Source: Tubulanus polymorphus
Taxonomy: Eukaryota; Animalia; Nemertea
Reading direction: 5' to 3'
NCBI RefSeq assembly: GCF_964204645.1
Contig: NC_134034.1
Location: 372,001 to 436,000 of the forward strand
DNA: 64,000 nucleotides
The translations under genes were made by a program, and so were the position numbers. Numbering within the stretch: position 1 is the first letter of the stretch; every line of letters starts with the position of its first letter. Below the pieces are notes generated by a model that was given only the letters and a program-made list of their open reading frames with translations, did not search any database and was not told where the DNA came from. Shown piece after piece: positions 3,001 to 61,993 of the stretch.

Positions 3001-6000
3001 CCAATGAAAACAAATACAGAACAAGTTACTGTTAGATCTGGACAAAGAACAAAGTACTGTTTCATCAGATCAGCTCTCTCATCTCCTATCAATAAAATGT
3101 TCAAATCGTTTTTAACCATAAATAAGTAATTAAGCCATCTCTGTTTGTTAAATCGACAGAACAACACAGAACAACGTTACTGAAATCTCTGTTTGGGAGT
3201 TTTATTGATTTTCACCACACCCGTCCCCTACCTAGAGAAACAGAAAATTGTGTTTTTACCTAAAAGGAAGACCATTTCCGGAATGAGAGTTCTGCGTCTG
3301 CATTCGTCGAGAGCTTTCTGTAACGGCAGGTAATTACTGCTTCTCAGGAACGGTAACAGTTTCTTATAGTCGTACTCGGCGTACAGCGCCACCTGGATCC
3401 CGTGATACTGCTGTCCGACGTGTGGATCTTTAGTGAACAACGCATCCAGATACTAGACAATACAATACAGAAATGTGAAACTCTGAATACAGCAACGGTT
3501 TCTGAGACCACCAACATACGCCCCCTATTGTGCAGAAACAGCACCCCGAAATACTCACCACATGCAACAGCTCTGAATAATCTCTCAACTGATCAACTAC
3601 TTTTTCAATCTGTTGAAATAAGAAAATAGATCTGAAATGAAGATCTGAAATGGGTGGCTCCAAGCTGCAGATTGTCTGAAGGGCTGCAGTTCCATGGCAG
3701 ATTGTCTGAAGGGGTGCAGGTTACAGGCCGCAGATTGTCTGAAGGGCTGCAGATTACAGGCCGCAGATTGTCTGAAGGGGTGCAGGTTACAGGCTGCAGA
3801 TTGTTCGAAGGGGTGCAGGTTACAGATTGTCTGAAGGGGTGCAGGTTACAGGCTGCAGATTGTCTGAAGGCTGCAGGTTACAGATTGTCTGAAGGGGTGC
3901 AGGTTACAGATTGTCTGAAGGGGTGCAGGTTACAGGCTGCAGATTGTCTGAAGGCTGCAGGTTACAGATTGTCTGAAGGGGTGCAGGTTACAGATTGTCT
4001 GAAGGGCTGCAGGTTACAGGCTGTAGATTGTCTGAAGGGGTGCAGGTTACAGGTTGTAGATTGACACCTGAAATAACTTTTCAACTTACTGGAACTTTGT
4101 CAATGTTATCGATGAAGAGTTGAACTGCTTTCTCTTTATCAAATCTCATCAGTTTCACAATTTTATCACTGATCGAATCAAATAAATTGTGTTTATGAAT
4201 TAAATCAAACGCGTTCTCGTTTTTCAACCTGAAAAGAAATCCACGAATTTGTTAAATAATCCAATCGACTTTCAAAGCGGTGTTTTTAATAGATGAGTTA
4301 CTGTTAGAAATGGTGTTTTCAATAGATGAGGAGTTACTGTTAGAAATGGTGTTTTCAATAGATGAGGAGTTACTGTTAGAAATGGTGTTATCAATAGATG
4401 AGGAGTTACTGTTAGAAATGGTGTTTTTAATAGATGAGGAGTTACTGTTAGAAATGGTGTTTTCAATAGATGAGGAGTTACTGTTAGAAATGGTGTTTTC
4501 AATAGATGAGGAGTTACTGTTAGAAATGTACTTCGTTTTCCAATAGATATAAAAATATGGTACAAATCCGTTTTTATGGTGAATACAGTTTTTGCTGAAA
4601 CTGTAAGATTTCTGCGAAGCACTTAATTTGGAATCGACAATTTCTTACCTTAAATACGTAGATAAAGCCTTCTCGTACTGCATATCAGCGACATACCTGA
4701 AATAAATCTAAATCTTAATTCTGCATCTTGTTGTAAAATAACGATAGTTGTTTGCTGCGTAATTTCACTTACAATTCAGCGAGGCATTGATGTAAAATTG
4801 CGTCTTCGTTTCGAGATTTATTCAGTTTATCGACAACCGCATAAATTACGCTCTTTATATTGTACAAATTCGTCGGCCATTCTTCGATCAAATTCTCGAA
4901 ACCCTGTGAAAATATGATGTCATAGGGGGATATATCAAATCACTGGTACTCGGTAGGTTACTAAATGATATCATAGGGGGATAATGTAGGCAGACATCTT
5001 TTCTAGAAGTGTCTATAGATCGAATAACTAGTAGACAATGATGTCATAGGGGGATTTATGGATGCAGCCATCTTTTCTTAGAAGTGTCTATAGAACAAAT
5101 CACTAGCAGACAATTTGATGATGTCATAGGGGGATTTATGGAGGCAGACATCTTTTCTAGAAGTGTCTATAGATCAAATCACTAGTAGACAATTTGATGA
5201 TGTCATAGGGGGATTCAAGGATGTAGCCATCTTTTCTAGAAGTGTCTATAGATTAAGGATATTTTTAGAGTGTGTTTGTCATCACTTACTTTTTCATCAG
5301 TTTGTAGAAATTCATTGAGAACCATTTCGTAAACTGCTGGATCTAATTTCGGATTTGATTTGGGTAGAAATGGTGCAATTGCCTAAAAACAAAGAAACAT
5401 GAAACATACTCAACTGTGACTATAAAACCGGGCACGATCAGGGTTCAGTTTCAGGAAAATGTTTGAGCTTAAAACAGGTAAGTTTGAATCGACGTGGACA
5501 ATAAAAACATTGAGAACGTTACCAACAGATAATAAACCCAACAATTTGAGTTAAACTTTTAGTCAAACCATGCTCCGGTTGGGCCTGATGGTAATTTGAT
5601 GATGTCATAGGGCAATTTATAAAGACATCATTTCTAGAAAAGTCTTTAGATCAAATCAGTGTATTGATGATGTCAAAGGGGGATCTATGAAGGCAGACAT
5701 CTTTTTTAGGAGGTCATATAGATCAAATCACTAGTAGATGATGTCATAGGGGGATTTGTAGAAATAGACATCTTTCTAGAAGTGTCGTATAGATGAAATA
5801 CCTTAAGCTGATGGATATGAGCGAATTTATAAACCTCTTCCTCCCACAGTTGTCGATTGTTACCCAGAACTCGACGACACAATTTTCCGCCCTCGTCGTA
5901 TTTTTTCTCTTGTAGCAAATAATCCAAATAAAGTCGACCGATTTCCTGAATGTTGTGATATTTTAATTGTTTGCTGTGTTCGGTCGCCGCATTCATCGCG

Positions 6001-9000
6001 TCCTACAAATTATCATTTACAAAACTATTTCAACAGGGATTTCTCACGAGGATGTTTTTGGGGTTTAACAGCTTTAGACCCGGTTCAACAGTTGCGAGTT
6101 GAGATTTGAGTATCAATATTTTAACTCTCAAACTGCCGTTCCAGTAAAATATTAACTAAAATGTAGTTATTTCTGGTTTGACTGAGTCAACTTTTTCTAA
6201 TAGCTGTGGATATCTGTTGTACCGGGTCTAGACTGTCGCGTCTCGGGCCCCCGGTTACCGGGCAGGTCCAGACTGTCGCGTCTCGGGCCCCCGGTTACCG
6301 GGCGGGTCTAGACTGTCGCGTCTCGGGCCCCCGGTTACTGGGCAGGTCCAGACTGTTGCGTCTCATGCCCTGGTTAACCAATTGTCATTCATACGTACTT
6401 CAAATTTATGATGTTCGAGTAGCCAAGCGATATGGTCGTCGTGATCGCGTATCTTAGCAACGGCGATATCCTGCGGGCTAACAATGAAAAACAGTTTGTC
6501 TTCGACCAACGATTCTACAATAGAAAACAATTCAAAAATATTCCGAACCGAAATTCAAATTTTGAATATTTCCGTGAGCTGCTGCTGCTATTGTTGTTGT
6601 TGTTACCGAGGTGATAATCATTACAGCGATATAAATTGAATCCTCGAATCGATAGCGCGTCGTTTGATAATTCCTCGTAACTAACGATCTCCGGAGCGAG
6701 GATACGCAGATGAGGACGAGGAGACGAGTTATCCTCCGTCGGAGTATCAGACGTTGACGTCTGCAAAATCAACAAAAACAAAAACTGTTTCTAAATTTTG
6801 AAGAATATTATGAATTTTTGTTGTTAGCCCGGATTGAATTGAATAGTTACTCGTTCTGTTTCGTCGTAGGTAAGAGCTAGTATATTATCATTCAACGGCG
6901 CCAGACCACACACGTAGAAATCTGTCTTAAATTGAGAAACTGAAAAACAAGAAACAGTTGAAAAAATCAATCATTTCTCTACCACATCTTCTAAAATTCA
7001 TTATCAGGCATTCCTTATTTACCAATTTCAACATTTTGACTGCAGGGAGAGGTGTTGGGGAGGGGGAGGTGTTTAGGGGGAGGAGAGATGTGTTTAGGGG
7101 ATGGGAGATGTGTTTAGGGGAGGAGAGAGGTGTTTAGGGGGATGGGAGAGGTGTTTAGGGGAGGAGAGAGGTGTTTAGGGGGATGGGAGAGGTGTTTAGG
7201 GGGATGGTAGAGGTGTTTAGGGGGATGGGAGAGGTTTTTAGGGGGATGGTAAGGGTGTGAGAGGGAGGAGAGAGTATCAAGGGGGTGGGGGAGTTGTTGA
7301 GGAGAGGGGGAGATGTTGGAGGGGATATTGTTATTTACCTATCTCTACGTATCGACTTGGTAAATCTTGAATCGTATTTGCCTGATCTTTAATTACGCAC
7401 GTTTTAATTCCGTCCGCCCAACCGATCATAAACGTACGGTCGTCTTTCCAACAAATATTACAACGATATAACTCAGCTCTTAAACTGAAATATCAACGAT
7501 ATAACTCAGCTCTTAAACTGAAATATCAACGATATAACTCAGCTCTTAAACTGAAATATCAAAGATATAACTCAGCTCTTAAACTGAAATATCAACGATA
7601 TAACTCAGCTCTTAAACTGAAATATCAAAGATATAACTCAGCTCTTAAACTGAAATATCAACGATATAACTCAGCTCTTAAACTGAAATATCAACGATAT
7701 AACTCAGCTCTTAAACTGAAATATCAAAGATAGAACTCAGCTCTTAAACTGAAATATCAACGATACAACTCAGCTCTTAAACTGAAATATCAACCATTGA
7801 GAAGCATTTGAAGGAGTCAGGAAACAGTAAAGCTGGCAGCTTGTGAGTTGCCCAGTATTTCATACCTAGGATGATGATCCCTCGGAATGTTAGTGATCCT
7901 TTTATTTGTGCTTACATCAAAAACTTTAACCCCCTAAAAAAAACCAAAAAATAAGCAAAAATGATTATAGACAGTTCTGGACGCAGTTCCACAGTTCTGG
8001 ATATATATTCATACCAAATCATTTGCCCACGCGATGAAACAAGACCGCCATTTGATCGTACGTATCGGTCCCTCCCCCTGGTGGATGACTTGTGACTTAT
8101 AACGATTGAATAAACCTTTTTCTTGATGAATCAACTGAAAAATAAATCGATACATTTACATCACATCAAAACCGGTCTCCATTTTCTGGACAAGCCCGTT
8201 TATAGACAAGACCGGTCTCCATTTTCTGGACTAGCTGGTTTATAGACTTACCTTCTCATGGCCGGAAACGAACTGACGTCCACTTCCAGATTGGTAGAAG
8301 TTTGGCGCGATCGCGACGGCGCGGACCGGCCGGTCGTAAGATTCTCGATAGTTCAGTTCGTTACCGTAGAGACCGGTTATAACTACCTGCATAGAAATAG
8401 CGACAACTGTTGCTACATTTATTATAAAGTTGGTTAATGGCGGATAAATACCAGAGTAACAATGAATTTATAATTCAATGTTACTATGTCAACTATCCAG
8501 GGATTAAATCATGTGAAACTGAAGCCATTTTTCTCTAAATTTTTGGCATTTTTCCCGTTTATTTAAACCACTGGTGTTAGATTTAATAATTTGAATTCAA
8601 CATTTTGTTCCATATCAAAAACTTGTATCGTCTTTGAGCCAGTTTTAACGAGCAAATCAACCGATCGATTACAATGAATAATTAGTCGATTGTCGAACTC
8701 TGAGTTGAGAATCACTGCTAATTGCGTAATTATCAATTAAGGTAATTAGTGACAAGTCGTCAGAAGCTGAGATGCCCCCTCCGAACAGATACTCCGTGTG
8801 TCACTTGCCAAATCATTAGTTATAAAATCTAGACGTGATTTTTCAACCAGTATCAAATTGATTCACAGCAACTGAGAACTAACACCATGGATTACGAAAC
8901 AGTCGTCGAAAACTTCTTCGAAATCGAGAAACGCTTTCAAGCGGCGTGCGAGAGAATTATCGTCATCGACGAAAGACTATCGCGTCTCGACGTTCAACTG

Positions 9001-26870: not shown

Positions 26871-27802
26871 TCTCTGCGGCTGATGACAGAGTAGTCTGAT
26901 CTACAGTAGAACTGTCGCTTTACGAGTAGAAACTAATGTGAATATTTCATCTACGAAATGAATTAAATTATGAAAATTTATAATGAACTACAAAATAATG
27001 ACGAATAAAAAGACGAAATGAATATTGAATGAAGTCCGAGCTTGGTTTTGAAGTTGAAAAATTTTTCCTTTGGGAGTTTTTCGTCTCGCACTGACATGAA
27101 TAGGTCAGAACTTCCGTGCTAATAGGAAAAATTATCACCTCGAAGGAAGATGGGGTTTGGTATCTTATTTTCCTTAAGTTATTTCCCGGTTTCAACGAGA
27201 CATGCCAGCGTGAGCCGACTCTGCCATCATTGACCAGGAGCAAAAAAGTCTAGGCCTAATAAGTACACGGTTGAACGTGACTTATGATGAATAGATGAAG
27301 TCTGAAGCTCTTATACGACTAAGGCTTTATCCAATCCACCGGTGTTTTGTTCTTGGGCTTAAATATTTCCAAATTAAGCAAAATACTTCATGAAAACTAT
27401 ATTCAATATTTGTTAGAACAAATTCCAATATTTTAAGTTGTAAATAAATTTTCCTTTCAGGACAGAACTATGATTTGGACCCATTAAAACTGTTTTTGTT
27501 GAATTCAGTGTCTATTCCAAATCCCACCAGATGGCGGGCGTAAACCTGGACTCGGCGCCATTTGATCCAGTACATTGAGGATTCTCAGCCGAACGAAATG
27601 ATTTTTTCTCTTCCTAAGGCTGCTACAGTAATGAATAAACTTGTTTTTTTTCGTCCCAGCATTCATGATGTATATTTCATGAGTACTGTTTCAAAATGTA
27701 ATCTGCCGGCGTCGAGCGCGCCGGTCGGAGCGCTCCGCATAACGGCGCCGGGTAACGAGCTCGTATTCCGGGCTATGCCGTACTGCCTCTAGCACTAAGC
27801 AG

Positions 27803-27810
27803 CTTCCTCC
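27803..27810 (+). promoter_or_regulatory. 5'TOP/TCT-like pyrimidine transcription start of EF1-beta
   Basis: CTTCCTCC 43 nt upstream of the ATG. This is typical of translation-apparatus and snoRNA-host genes. Confidence 0.5.
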
Positions 27811-27845
27811 ATTTACACGTTGTCGACGCTTCTCTCGAGTTTAAA

Positions 27846-30628
27846 ATGGGTTTCGGTGATTTATCGACTGCAGCAGGAGTATCAGTACTCAATGAATACC
27901 TGGCTGATAAGAGCTATATCGAAGGGTAAGTGAAAAATCTCTGATTTAACCGTTATTTTAGCCGTAATTCGCTACCAAAATGTGATTCAGTTCGTCGATC
28001 GGCCGGATGGTGGCAGCACGTGATAGTAGTGTTTTATTATTTACAGGTATGAACCGTCTCAAGCCGATACAGTCGTCTTCAAGTCGATGAAGTCAACTCC
28101 GTCGGTAGAACTATTCCACGCTCTACGCTGGTACAATCACATCCTGTCATTCCGTGACGAGGCTGACAGGTAAATACAGCGCAACCTAGTGGATTGCTGT
28201 AGCATCATTCAAAAACTAACATCGTCCGAGTTTGTGATGAGATAATTTATTTCTACCTAGAAGAAAATTTGTTTTTACAAATATTTACATGTAATAAGAG
28301 ATATGTTTTAACCGATCACGCCCCCTGGTGATAGTTTAATGAACCAGTTTTTTCATTGTCTCTTCAGTTTCCCGGGAACAAAGAAATCTGTAAGCGAGTA
28401 CGGACCGTCGGTTACCCCGAGCGATAACCGTAAAAAGGCCGCTGCAGCAGATGATGATGATGACGATGACGATGATGATGATTTCGATATGTTAGCCAGT
28501 GATGATGAGGAAGAACAAGCAGCTGCTGAGGAAAGGAGGAAGAAAGCAGAAGCCGCTTATTACGAAAAGAAAGCCAGTAAGTTTAGAGCGGAGCCACCCT
28601 TCCACATCCACTCTCGGCCTTGTGAGTCTGAGTCACCCTTCCATATCCAGTCTAGAGCCATCCTCTATGCACATTGAGGCTGGAGTCATCCTCTATGCAC
28701 ATTGAGGCTGGAGTCATTCTTCCTGTTAAAGTGAGCCCGGAGCCACTGTCCCTGCGCATTGAGCCCGGAGCTGCCCTCCCTGCGCATTGAGCCCGGAGTC
28801 GCTCCCAGCTCAGTGAACCTGAAGCCGCCCACCTGTCCAGAGTTACCCCCTCACAGCCCTAAACATAGTTTTATCTACAAGGATGAAAACTTCACAAATG
28901 AATCAATGATGAATTCAAGTCTAAGAAGTTCTCTGAGTGGAGAAGGGAGCAGGGGGTTATTGTATCATAGGGGGACCTGGGGAGTTGAATGATGGTTTCA
29001 ATTCTTAGGTTCAATTAAACATGTTTGATAAGAGTCTATTACTTATACGATGATGAATTAAATAATCAGAATTCACAATTTCTGAATATTTTTATTACCT
29101 CTAAGAAGTTCTGAGTACAATTCAATAGATCAATAATTTATTGCTGGTATTTCTATTCTATTCGATTGAAATTTCTATGAGAAAGATATTTTTATCTCGC
29201 GCCTACTGACTGCTGTGCTGTGCTGTGCTGTGCTGTGCTGTACTGTGCTGTGATGAATGAACAATTCAGATAAACAGAATGTTGATATTCGATTTTAACC
29301 TCTAAGAAGTTCTGAGCACAAATTTGAATTATTAGGCAGCAGTAGAAGTTGGTATTAGTTTGACTCTTACGAAGGCGGGGGTTCACTATGGGGGTCAGGG
29401 AGGGAGGTGGTTAAACCTGCTGTGCTGTGGAGGGAGGTGGTTAAACCTGCTGTGCTGTGGAGGGAGGTGGTTAAACCTGCTGTGCTGTGATGAATGAACA
29501 ATTCAGACAAACAGAATGTTGATATTCGATTTTAACCTCTAAGAAGTTCTGAGCACAAATTTGACGCAGCAGTGGAAGTTGGTATTAGTTTGACTACTAC
29601 AGGGGTTAACTACAGATGGTCAGGGAGGGAGGTGGTTAAACCTGCTATAGATAGTTGAGACTGTTACAGGGGCTTATTGGCTATTCAGAAGTGGTTAAAA
29701 GTTTCTAAAACCTGCTGCGCCATGATGAATTGACGAAGCAGAATCAAACATTGTTGATATTTGTTTTAATCCTCTAAGAAGTTCTGAGCGCAATAACAAG
29801 CAGTACTGGGTTTGGTAGACTAGGACTGCAGCAGGGAATCAGAACTTAAAACACGGTTCATAAAACGGTCGTTTAAAGTCACGGGATGAAACAATGAACC
29901 TCCACTTATCAGCATTATGTTGTATCATGATTGAAAGGGAGAGATTTTGTTGATTTATTTCAGAGAAGCCGGCTGTGATCGCTAAAAGTTCAATCATTCT
30001 CGATGTGAAACCATGGGAAGATTCGACTGATCTCGTCGAGATGGAACGTCTGGTGAGAACTATCCAAACTGACGGACTCGTCTGGGGAGCCTGTAAGTTC
30101 ATTCAATCGGTTTAATTCTTCAAGGGCTCAAACTGAACCCTAGAATATTACTAGCAACTGCTTTATTTATGCAAATATCTTAAAATGTCATCTTCATTTT
30201 CTTTTCTCCATCGTTTTCAGCTAAATTGATCCCGGTCGCTTACGGCATCAAAAAATTACAGATCATGTGCGTCGTTGAGGATGACAAGGTGAGACGAGTA
30301 AAAACCCGTTTAAATTTCGAGTCCTTGATTTCGTCCGATCGTGGAAACAAATCTAATACTTGAAGCATCGTTACTTTAGGTTGCATTAAATGTTTTCGAT
30401 CAATTTCAACAATTTGATCGAAATCATTAAATGTTTACTAAAGTTTGTAGGATTTGAGTTGACTATATTTCAGAGCACAGCGAGAGAGCTGCGCGAGGTG
30501 TGCTGATGTTGTAATAATATTTTGTATTTAATGGTTTTTAGGTCGGTACCGATTTCTTGGAAGAGAACATCCTCGGTTTCGAAGATCACGTCCAGTCCGT
30601 AGATATCGCGGCTTTCAATAAGATATAA
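27846..30628 (+). CDS. EEF1B2: Elongation factor 1-beta
   Basis: Exons 27846-27925, 28047-28169, 28368-28576, 29964-30092, 30221-30288, 30542-30628. Translation: [35 protein letters not shown]..acidic linker..[71 protein letters not shown] at about 30665. Confidence 0.96.
28874..28941 (+). ncRNA. Box C/D snoRNA, SNORD125-like (predicted 18S Cm1440-equivalent guide)
   Basis: Variant C box AGGATGA at 28880, D' ATGA, C' ATGATGA, guide TCTAAGAAGTT-CT, then D box CTGA 28933-28936. Terminal stem TCTAC/GTGGA. The fifth nucleotide upstream of D is G, pairing with the C of 18S AACUUCUUAGA. Confidence 0.65.
29046..29117 (+). ncRNA. SNORD61: Box C/D snoRNA, SNORD61/U61-like (18S Um1442-equivalent guide), copy 1
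   Basis: C box ATGATGA 29050-29056, guide CCTCTAAGAAGTT, D box CTGA 29111-29114, stem TAC/GTA. Confidence 0.8.
29244..29320 (+). ncRNA. SNORD61: Box C/D snoRNA, SNORD61-like, copy 2
   Basis: C box GTGATGA 29250-29256, D' CAGA, C' ATGTTGA, guide CCTCTAAGAAGTT, D box 29312-29315, stem TGTGC/GCACA. Confidence 0.85.
29481..29557 (+). ncRNA. SNORD61: Box C/D snoRNA, SNORD61-like, copy 3
   Basis: C box 29487-29493, D box 29549-29552. Nearly identical to copy 2. Confidence 0.85.
29716..29792 (+). ncRNA. SNORD61: Box C/D snoRNA, SNORD61-like, copy 4
   Basis: C box ATGATGA 29722-29728, guide TCCTCTAAGAAGTT, D box 29784-29787. Stem TGCGC/GCGCA shows a compensatory change relative to TGTGC/GCACA. Confidence 0.85.
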
Positions 30629-61006: not shown

Positions 61007-61993
61007 TTAACCCTTGCTGCTCCGGACGACGCAGTATTTTACACTCTGAATTACAGTCGTACGAACTTCTTTTCCAAGCAATAGATAAATATAGAAATTC
61101 ACTACGTAATTACAACTGTGCAGCAACGAAATTCCCGCTAGGAGGCGCTCCATATCTTCGATCGGCATCGACACGTATATCGACAACGTCGTCGGTAGCG
61201 TAGCAACGATAAAAACGGCCGTCACTGTTACCAGCATAACGGTCGTTTGGCGGTTCCGAGCTATAGATGTTTTATTACTACTAGCGCCCCCTGTCGCGTC
61301 GAATTCGGGTTGCCGGTTAAGGCTGACAACAATGATGACATTAGCGACGGTTGTCAACAACATGGGGACGATAAACACGTATGTGACGGCGTACGTGAAA
61401 ATTATATTTTGATAACGACTTCCGCCCGAATAATGGCAGCCATTTTGTCGCGTATAACGCATGTGCACCACTCCCTGGAATGGACTGACCAATAAACAGT
61501 TTAACAGTATTACAATGCAGGAAATTTTGCGGGCAATGGCCGGGCTACAGACCTGTCGTGCTGAAAACGGCCATAATACGACAACAAGTCTCTCCACAGC
61601 GACCACGACTACGAACCAGCTGCTCGAGTGCGAACAAACCAGGAAAAAATACTCATAAATTATGCAAATCGGTAAACTTTTTATGCATGACGTCACTAAC
61701 GATTCGGTTGAGTATTGGACGGCGGGCATTAGTGCCAGACCTATCGATGAACCGAGGTCGGTTAGCGCCAACACGGTCAAATAGGTAGCGTAGGATAAAC
61801 GCCGGAATCGTCTGCTTGTCATAACGAATATACTAGCCAGATTACCGACCAATCCGAATCCGAAAACAATCAACAGTCCGCTGAATACGATTCGTCTGTT
61901 TGCCGGCTTCATCCGGGATAGATTCGTCAATACAATATAGGTCCAATAGGGTTTACTGACTGGTGGCGTCGCCCCTTCAGTAGACGAGTTCAT
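61007..61993 (-). CDS. Intronless class A GPCR (invertebrate peptide-receptor-like, FMRFamide/sex-peptide-receptor-type group)
   Basis: 328 aa with seven hydrophobic segments: GLVGN (TM1), YLTVLALTD (TM2), SSWFVVVVAVERL (TM3), TLP (TM6), NYVVNFYIY (TM7). N-terminal N-glycosylation sequon. Confidence 0.9.
   Translation of the reverse strand: MNSSTEGATPPVSKPYWTYIVLTNLSRMKPANRRIVFSGLLIVFGFGLVGNLASIFVMTSRRFRRLSYATYLTVLALTDLGSSIGLALMPAVQYSTESLVTSCIKSLPICIIYEYFFLVCSHSSSWFVVVVAVERLVVVLWPFSARQVCSPAIARKISCIVILLNCLLVSPFQGVVHMRYTRQNGCHYSGGSRYQNIIFTYAVTYVFIVPMLLTTVANVIIVVSLNRQPEFDATGGASSNKTSIARNRQTTVMLVTVTAVFIVATLPTTLSIYVSMPIEDMERLLAGISLLHSCNYVVNFYIYLLLGKEVRTTVIQSVKYCVVRSSKG

Follow-up and report, generated by a model that had tools for sequence, protein, structure and literature searches.

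The question raised by the third intron of the EF1-beta gene of Tubulanus polymorphus is whether one animal intron can be the source of several box C/D snoRNAs, and by which route the interior copies would then be freed. The C/D snoRNAs of vertebrates and insects are described as lying one to an intron, with their release explained by debranching and exonucleases, and we know of no animal enzyme that cuts between the snoRNAs of one intron. The window is a stretch of 64,000 nucleotides (contig NC_134034.1, positions 372,001 to 436,000, forward strand), for which a sequence-only reading had proposed five such snoRNAs within one intron; all coordinates below are those of the window. A neighbouring GPCR has a mostly nemertean cluster as its nearest in the Atlas. 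The runs compared with it are X3, which behaves as RNA (not recorded as such), X1, which behaves as DNA, and X2 and X4, which behave as Hi-C-like DNA. The exons of the host, compared with Pfam one by one, and the intron under study are listed below.

27846 to 27925, + strand: EF1-beta exon 1, coding part (start MGFGDL...); translation, X3 spliced joint to 28047
28047 to 28169, + strand: EF1-beta exon 2; translation, X3 joints at both ends
28368 to 28576, + strand: EF1-beta exon 3, acidic region; translation, X3 joints 28166 to 28365 (cut +3) and 28576 to 29964
28577 to 29963, + strand: intron 3, 1387 nt, GTAAGT...AG, host of the snoRNA array; exactly these 1387 nt absent from X3 spliced contigs, ends GT..AG
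29964 to 30092, + strand: EF1-beta exon 4, start of the EF1_GNE domain; Pfam PF00736, E 1.3e-8, X3 joints
30221 to 30294, + strand: EF1-beta exon 5, 3' end inferred; PF00736 positions 37-59, X3 joint 30092 to 30221
30545 to 30628, + strand: EF1-beta exon 6 with stop, borders from translation only; PF00736 positions 60-88, without X3 contig

The X3 spliced contigs show a strongly expressed host (1e4-7e4x on exons) and contain one GT..AG joint, 28576 to 29964, that encloses all five units, which bears out the intron borders proposed earlier, 28577 (GTAAGT) and 29963 (AG). No internal joint is present within intron 3 in the X3 contigs, and the intron contains no internal or recursive GTRAGT/AG splice motif, so a separate sub-intron for each unit was rejected. 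The array has the layout that defines intronic clusters of the rice and Drosophila type, with two or more snoRNA genes in sense orientation inside one intron of a host gene that is expressed. With the unit borders drawn as a 5-bp stem, 1 nt and the C box on one side and CTGA followed by the 5-bp stem on the other, the array is composed of the following units.

28874 to 28941, + strand: unit 1, 68 nt, divergent; stem TCTAC/GTGGA, C box AGGATGA; sequence, X3 contig starting at 28887
29044 to 29119, + strand: unit 2, 76 nt, SNORD61-type; stem TATAC/GTACA (4/5 pairs); Rfam 46.5 bits
29244 to 29320, + strand: unit 3, 77 nt, SNORD61-type; stem TGTGC/GCACA; Rfam 47.9 bits
29481 to 29557, + strand: unit 4, 77 nt, SNORD61-type, 1 nt different from unit 3; Rfam 46.0 bits
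29716 to 29792, + strand: unit 5, 77 nt, SNORD61-type; stem TGCGC/GCGCA (compensatory); Rfam 44.7 bits

These exact borders agree with the span of 28874-29792 given in the earlier reading, and the unit-to-unit spacings are 180, 201, 237 and 235 nt. The expected matches to SNORD61/U61 (Rfam RF00270, clan CL00067) are found for units 2-5, all above the gathering score of 43 by small margins of 1.7-4.9 bits, while unit 1 has no SNORD61 or snoU61 match in Rfam even at E<=10. Units 2-5 contain the C box ATGATGA or GTGATGA and the D box CTGA (in unit 2, C ATGATGA, D' CAGA and D CTGA, with a guide of 13 nt). Unit 1 combines CTGA with a weakened C box (AGGAUGA, where G replaces the conserved U), contains a perfect ATGATGA internally and lacks a canonical C box and the CAGA D' box that units 2-5 have in common, so that the claim of a full set of boxes in every unit holds for units 2-5 only. 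A strict C/D filter (RTGATGA, CTGA 45-110 nt further on and a 5/5 stem), applied to both strands of the whole window, is passed by units 3, 4 and 5 only. The units are SNORD61/U61-type box C/D snoRNA genes, ordinary as genes, since both the family and its target are old and well known, and the array, earlier counted as five units, is best read as four canonical units and one divergent unit.

The guide 12-mer CTAAGAAGTTCT occurs five times in the 64-kb window, always on the + strand and within intron 3, against 0.59 occurrences expected from shuffles, and 0/100 shuffles reach five copies. The 13-nt guide of units 2-5 is perfectly complementary to the 18S of this same genome (locus L010, positions 2004-2016, within an SSU match at 434-2438), and the fifth position from box D is U1575, equivalent to human U1442; in unit 5 an added G-U pair extends the duplex to 14 bp. 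The proposed complementarity to the conserved 18S segment recognised by U61/SNORD61 is thereby confirmed on the organism's own 18S, with a U at the +5 position. The guide of unit 1, TCTAAGAAGTTC, pairs with the same 18S over 12 bp, and an extra CT just ahead of CTGA places it 2 nt further from that box; this insertion moves the predicted target from U1575 to C1573, the fifth position in this unit. For a second guide, at D', the first 10 kb of the rDNA unit gave no rRNA match beyond chance expectation.

The bodies of the units are 74-79% identical, whereas their 80-nt flanks share 44-52%, which is the random level (shuffled 48 +/- 3.6). Of the 25 cells of the terminal 5-bp stem, 24 (96%) are paired, and in three of the five pairs both partners have changed, a result equalled in only 3 of 500 shuffles. 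The compensatory change reported before (TGTGC/GCACA versus TGCGC/GCGCA) is real and is joined by two more, from unit 2 (G-C to A-U) and from unit 1, and the conservation pattern of the array, with bodies kept, spacers at the random level and stem changes compensatory, supports the earlier reading. Some of the contrast between bodies and flanks could also result from gene conversion. Units 3 and 4 are 98.7% identical, with a single difference (29271 T, 29508 C) and different flanks, so that only about three independent canonical lineages are represented. Two tandem repeats border on these units.

29211 to 29252, + strand: TGCTG microsatellite in spacer 2, overlapping the 5' stem of unit 3; TRF
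29399 to 29489, + strand: 30-bp tandem repeat in three identical copies, spacer 3, overlapping the 5' stem of unit 4; TRF, 100% matches

The tandem SNORD61/U61 family of intron 3 probably arose by local duplication, and is likely to be released from the EF1-beta intron and to guide modification of U1575. According to this model, duplication would have produced the four canonical units (2-5) and the divergent unit 1, all transcribed within the EF1-beta pre-mRNA, no separate promoter being evident. Each unit would fold as a C/D kink-turn closed by the 5-bp terminal stem, would then be expected to bind the core proteins Snu13, Nop56, Nop58 and fibrillarin, and would be trimmed out of the spliced and debranched intron. 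The 13-14-nt guide of units 2-5 is predicted to direct 2'-O-methylation of 18S U1575, while unit 1, if active, would aim 2 nt upstream at C1573. We infer the expression of RNAs of ~70-77 nt, the methylation of the target and the release route of the interior copies. For that route, cuts between the snoRNPs, which the earlier reading reached by logical argument, have about an even chance, and partial occupancy, in which exonucleases would reach whichever unit is assembled, is possible but somewhat doubtful. Several points count against the model, among them the small Rfam margins, the near-identity of units 3 and 4, possible gene conversion and the weakened C box of unit 1. Compared with shuffles, none of the four spacers folds more stably (z -1.4 to +0.4), nor do they have a fold in common that might signal cleavage. 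In mammals, a distance of ~70-80 nt from the 3' splice site is said, after work by Hirose and Steitz in 2001, to favour splicing-coupled assembly, and all units lie outside this position, at 171-1090 nt from the 3' splice site, with unit 5 ending 171 nt from it.

RNA contigs of X3 lie inside intron 3 at 28887-29204 and 29324-29551, at a depth of ~15-42x, and one of 256 nt (28887-29142) starts inside unit 1 and contains the whole of unit 2; contigs show no ends, and holes between them prove nothing. X3 contigs are absent from the first 290 and the last 410 nt of the intron, both of which the DNA runs cover. Intron RNA spanning units 1-2 and reaching unit 4 is present, and the confinement of its contigs to the region between units 1 and 4 is suggestive, though no proof. 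The main stable product might be a long sno-lncRNA-like RNA with snoRNA ends, running for instance from unit 1 to unit 4; nothing would then cut between assembled snoRNPs, and single snoRNAs would come mostly from the end units. Two snoRNAs per intron are the prerequisite for such RNAs in mammals (PMC4234469), and the confinement of the contigs to 28887-29551, a stretch that begins just within unit 1, stops where unit 4 ends and includes whole spacers, would fit. This product is nevertheless unlikely, as exon 6 is equally devoid of X3 contigs, which demonstrates that such holes occur, the contigs do not mark RNA ends, the intron depth is about 1/1000 of that of the exons, as for any splicing by-product, and the introns with 3 to at least 8 units elsewhere in this genome would be a waste unless their interior units could be freed.

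It is also improbable that only one or two copies work while the others, certainly unit 1, are decaying slippage duplicates in a repeat-rich intron. Tandem repeats do fill intron 3, some of them adjoining units 3 and 4, the single difference between these two units points to a recent duplication, and unit 1, with its non-consensus C box and no CAGA, fails the SNORD61 model; yet units 2, 3/4 and 5 retain boxes, guide and a compensated stem between flanks at the random level, even unit 1 keeps CTGA, 12 nt of guide and a stem that differs in sequence but pairs throughout, and an X3 RNA contig starts just inside it. An assembly artefact that inflates one snoRNA gene into all or part of the array is very improbable. 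Short-read contigs break at repeats and none from another run spans units 3-4, but units 1, 2, 3/4 and 5 differ in sequence and flanks, X1 DNA contigs contain both the unit 3-specific 3' flank (29314-29428) and the unit 4-specific 3' flank (29551-30447), X1 and X2 contigs cover units 1-2 and 5, and the division of the genome into 77 contigs points to an assembly from long reads.

The tandem SNORD61/U61 family shares with its human counterpart, whose gene sits within an RBMX intron and directs 18S Um1442 (PMC3511933), the box C/D architecture, a length of ~72-77 nt, the use of one guide only, at the D box (CCUCUAAGAAGUU), and the conserved target site in 18S. It differs in its host, EF1-beta instead of RBMX, in the presence of 4-5 tandem copies per intron instead of one, and in the 2-nt insertion by which unit 1 shifts its predicted target. 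The layout had been called unusual for an animal, which holds in so far as one box C/D snoRNA per intron is described as the animal norm (PMC3089462), but is overstated, as clusters are known in Drosophila (Huang et al. 2004 J Mol Biol, 2005 RNA) and in rice (Liang et al. 2002 NAR), according to the citations of these studies in PMC3089462 and PMC5932544, and also occur in EF2 and RPL8 here. As in these clusters, several snoRNA genes, often paralogues, lie on the sense strand of one protein-coding host intron without a promoter of their own. The Drosophila clusters are H/ACA, with C/D snoRNAs reported as one per intron (PMC3089462), whereas the clustered genes here are C/D; the rice clusters belong to a plant. 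Mammalian sno-lncRNAs (Prader-Willi region, RPL13A), discrete non-polyadenylated RNAs that end in a snoRNA on both sides and reach high levels, likewise come from introns with at least two snoRNAs, and the RNA contigs here include whole spacers; no discrete and abundant RNA of that kind is evident from the contigs here, and the mammalian introns are rare or alternative, whereas the present array occupies a constitutive housekeeping intron. Polycistronic snoRNA transcripts of yeast and plants, which are cut by RNase III (Rnt1) (PMC10557570), similarly carry several snoRNAs on one precursor and need separation between units, but they are mostly independent transcription units with Rnt1 stem-loops in the spacers, in contrast to the spacers without a significant fold in EF1-beta intron 3.

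EF1-beta intron 3 is the sole SNORD61 locus of the 268-Mb genome, with the only covariance model matches, and copy number may simply be a dosage solution, since this intron is the only source of a U1575 guide. Two other genomic matches to the 13-mer (L004 and L009) were rejected as copies, as they have neither C/D boxes nor an Rfam match. In the same genome, EF2 contains 2 snoRNAs in one intron and 3 in another, and a single intron of RPL8 carries at least 8 C/D-like units; the organism must thus be able to use such introns, and the layout appears to be a habit of the lineage rather than a one-off. The value of the locus lies in this layout. A constitutive intron of an animal with four or five copies under selection is at odds with the debranching and exonuclease scheme, and introns of EF2 and RPL8 are packed likewise. 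The organism could therefore be a natural system for studying how interior snoRNAs are freed, and for asking whether long RNAs with snoRNA ends are by-product or product. Tentatively, multi-unit arrays in single housekeeping introns (EF1-beta, RPL8, EF2) might be a routine source of C/D snoRNAs in this probably spiralian lineage, which, if true, would imply an animal pathway cutting between snoRNPs or stable snoRNA-ended intron RNAs; the X3 contigs over units 1-4 might then be a first trace of either, and unit 1 the retargeting of a guide, caught in the act, to a nearby nucleotide through its 2-nt insertion.

A search with the exon-4 ORF returned only 14 short EF1-beta/delta fragments of at most 77% identity, with no close relative among them, and in six of their loci (L012-L018) neither SNORD61 or any other Rfam snoRNA nor the guide motif is present. 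In metagenomes, the 18-nt sequence of guide plus D box matched 75 loci, none of which contains EF1-beta exons, so that hosting by EF1-beta is not general. As identified by our own model R1, these metagenome loci carry mostly single units, while L074 contains two, L036 three weak ones and L066 a fungal-looking pair.

The third intron of the EF1-beta gene contains five box C/D snoRNA units, confirmed as new SNORD61 genes organised as an intronic cluster, as a sequence-only reading had proposed. The window contains five copies of the 12-mer CTAAGAAGTTCT (0.59 expected by shuffles), all in sense orientation within this intron. The units are built alike: half of a 5-bp stem is followed by a single unpaired nucleotide, then by a C box of 7 nt, the body, CTGA and the second half of the stem.

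Box C/D units in EF1-beta intron 3 (window positions)
28874-28941, + strand, unit 1
29044-29119, + strand, unit 2
29244-29320, + strand, unit 3
29481-29557, + strand, unit 4
29716-29792, + strand, unit 5

The successive spacers measure 102, 124, 160 and 158 nt, with 297 nt between the 5' splice site and unit 1 and 171 nt between unit 5 and the 3' splice site. Units 2-5 score 46.5, 47.9, 46.0 and 44.7 bits against Rfam SNORD61, all exceeding the gathering score of 43, so that the anticipated Rfam support holds for these four but not for unit 1, which matches neither the SNORD61 nor the snoU61 model at E<=10. A strict box-and-stem filter applied to both strands of the 64 kb returns units 3, 4 and 5 only. 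This intron holds the only SNORD61 covariance-model matches in the 268-Mb assembly, and two other exact guide 13-mer matches were rejected as copies, as they are without C or D box and without Rfam match; it is thus the only SNORD61 source in the assembly.

The host gene has six exons (window 27846-30628, + strand), where the translation of exon 1 begins MGFGDL and successive stretches of the EF1_GNE domain (PF00736) are matched by exons 4, 5 and 6 in turn; searched against the whole genome, exon 4 yields one match. Expression evidence comes from Logan contigs, with sequencing run X3 taken as RNA by its behaviour, not by its record: EF1-beta exons are covered at a depth of 1e4-7e4, with GT..AG ends at the joints.

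EF1-beta splice junctions in X3 contigs
27925/28047, + strand
28169/28368, + strand
28576/29964, + strand
30092/30221, + strand

The third junction matches the intron borders drawn earlier from sequence (28577-29963, 1387 nt), and the units are shown to be transcribed with their host and the intron to be spliced. Intron 3 has no internal joint in X3 contigs and no recursive or internal splice-site motif. Intron 2 has a minor alternative 5' splice site (X3 joint 28290>28368, depth 10) beside the main 28169>28368. The pyrimidine tract CTTCCTCC (27801-27815), about 35 nt 5' of the start codon, is a candidate TOP-like start, a feature of many snoRNA hosts. A weak mir-181 match antisense in intron 5 (30370-30446, - strand; 31.4 bits against a gathering score of 45.5, E 8.7e-4 in a 7-kb search) is probably due to chance.

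The bodies of units 2, 3/4 and 5 are 74-79% identical, while their 80-nt flanks on either side are 44-52% identical, which is the shuffled level (48 +/- 3.6). Among units 1-5, 24 of the 25 terminal stem cells are paired, and three of the five pairs change on both sides, equalled by only 3 of 500 shuffles.

Compensatory stem changes
U-A to C-G, unit 5
G-C to A-U, units 1 and 2
G-C to C-G, unit 1

The compensatory stem change described previously is seen in unit 5, alongside two further changed pairs. Conserved bodies between random-level flanks, together with the paired stems, argue for selection on the units. A single base distinguishes unit 3 from unit 4, while indels and a 3 x 30-bp repeat set their flanks apart; such near-identity suggests a recent duplication or gene conversion, so that the independent canonical lineages number about three rather than four. 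Assembly collapse or inflation as the source of the duplication is ruled out, as the unit-3-specific and unit-4-specific 3' flanks are present separately in run X1, which behaves as DNA. X1 also carries a 7-nt insertion (AAATTTG) directly after unit 4 (29556), and the Hi-C-like DNA run X2 a 35-nt deletion in spacer 4 (29634-29668), while both alleles of two spacer polymorphisms (29143 G>A and 29165 A>T) are found in X3. In contrast to the spacers, no variants are reported inside units 1-5 in the run contigs.

The rDNA array lies on a contig other than that of EF1-beta, and one 18S copy (locus L010, 434-2438, 2005 nt) contains AACTTCTTAGAGG once, at 18S 1571-1583. The predicted guide complementarity is thus borne out on the genome's own 18S, with 13 bp of pairing in units 2-5 (14 bp with G-U in unit 5), where U1575 faces the fifth nucleotide upstream of box D. 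Human SNORD61 is hosted in an RBMX intron and targets 18S U1442 (PMC3511933), the site to which U1575 corresponds. Upstream of the CAGA D' box, comparison with the first 10 kb of the rDNA unit gave no credible second guide. This 18S is long, and a GC-rich expansion directly precedes its U61 target; the array (L010 and L011, G000:C12:7003600-7013599) has six tandem repeats of about 104 bp in the spacer after 18S (L011 3313-3833), a unit period of about 13.7 kb and at least 14 copies, with two more copies on contig C16.

Unit 1 retains CTGA and a 12-bp guide, and its stem, which has a sequence of its own, is paired throughout. The C box reads AGGATGA, the CAGA D' box is missing, and a perfect ATGATGA lies internally. 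As two extra bases (CT) separate the guide of unit 1 from CTGA, its target by the +5 rule would be C1573, not U1575. Unit 1 is a paralogue that has either acquired a new target or begun to decay.

From family membership, a C/D snoRNP would assemble on each unit. After debranching, exonucleases would free only the ends of the protected block, so that interior units would need cuts in the spacers, or release from molecules with a single occupied unit. The earlier proposal of endonucleolytic cuts or sno-lncRNA-like products appears reasonable. No significant fold was found in spacers 1-4, so that nothing resembling an Rnt1 signal is evident there. Hirose and Steitz reportedly found in 2001 that a certain position in the intron favours splicing-coupled assembly in mammals; all five units lie well upstream of that position, which fits with the terminal stem kept in every unit.

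X3 coverage within intron 3
28887-29142, contig of 256 nt, beginning within unit 1, spanning spacer 1 and unit 2 and extending 23 nt past unit 2
29113-29204, contigs in two allelic forms
29429-29488, contig
up to 29551, covered bins

Depth over the covered parts is 15-42, and 28640-28867 and 29552-29893 are without X3 contig. An RNA whose ends had been trimmed as far as units 1 and 4 would give this pattern, which is taken as a lead only, since contigs show neither ends nor absence and EF1-beta exon 6 is equally without X3 contig.

Drosophila C/D snoRNAs occur one per intron and H/ACA snoRNAs are clustered in introns (PMC3089462, citing Huang 2004/2005), intronic clusters exist in rice (PMC3089462, citing Liang 2002), and two snoRNAs within one intron are the prerequisite of sno-lncRNAs (PMC4234469). 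The EF1-beta array is a known kind of organisation, yet departs from what is described as the norm for C/D snoRNAs in animals. Its description as unusual for an animal is softened by precedent and by other multi-snoRNA introns in this genome, among which the array is not unique. EF2 (L020, G000:C5:3404000-3409000, + strand) has several snoRNA-bearing introns.

snoRNAs in EF2 introns (L020 positions)
Intron ~1541-2105, + strand, SNORD18-like unit (1597-1668, 39 bits, just below the gathering score of 41) and SNORA73 (1713-1927, 118.6 bits)
Intron ~3455-4326, + strand, SNORD18-like unit and two SNORA73
Intron ~2397-2767, + strand, fourth SNORA73, alone

In RPL8 (L101, G000:C9:14990000-14998500, - strand), one 1.14-kb intron contains at least eight C/D-like units from three guide families with 2, 1 and 5 copies (reverse-complement 4861-6002), and the next intron one further unit; no Rfam family matches the RPL8 units at E<=0.01. 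HSC70 (L019, G000:C6:6095000-6101500, + strand) has four SNORD14-like units (49.6-56.9 bits, below the gathering score of 64), one per intron, sharing the host-snoRNA pairing of vertebrate HSPA8. The genome-wide pattern would be of more interest than the EF1-beta locus alone, if RNA shows how the arrays resolve. In the literature available to the search, no paper dealt with how snoRNAs are organised in nemerteans or other spiralians.

Three metagenome contigs from other eukaryotes also have multiple U61-type units: two units separated by 207 nt, accompanied by TACTAAC motifs and fungal-looking (L066 494-718, - strand), two units about 430 nt apart (L074 4477-4969), and three weak units within a CACNA2D-like gene (L036 3461-5671). 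Elsewhere in the window, 61007-61993 (- strand) encodes a single-exon rhodopsin-type GPCR of 328 aa, whose closest ESM Atlas cluster is mostly nemertean.
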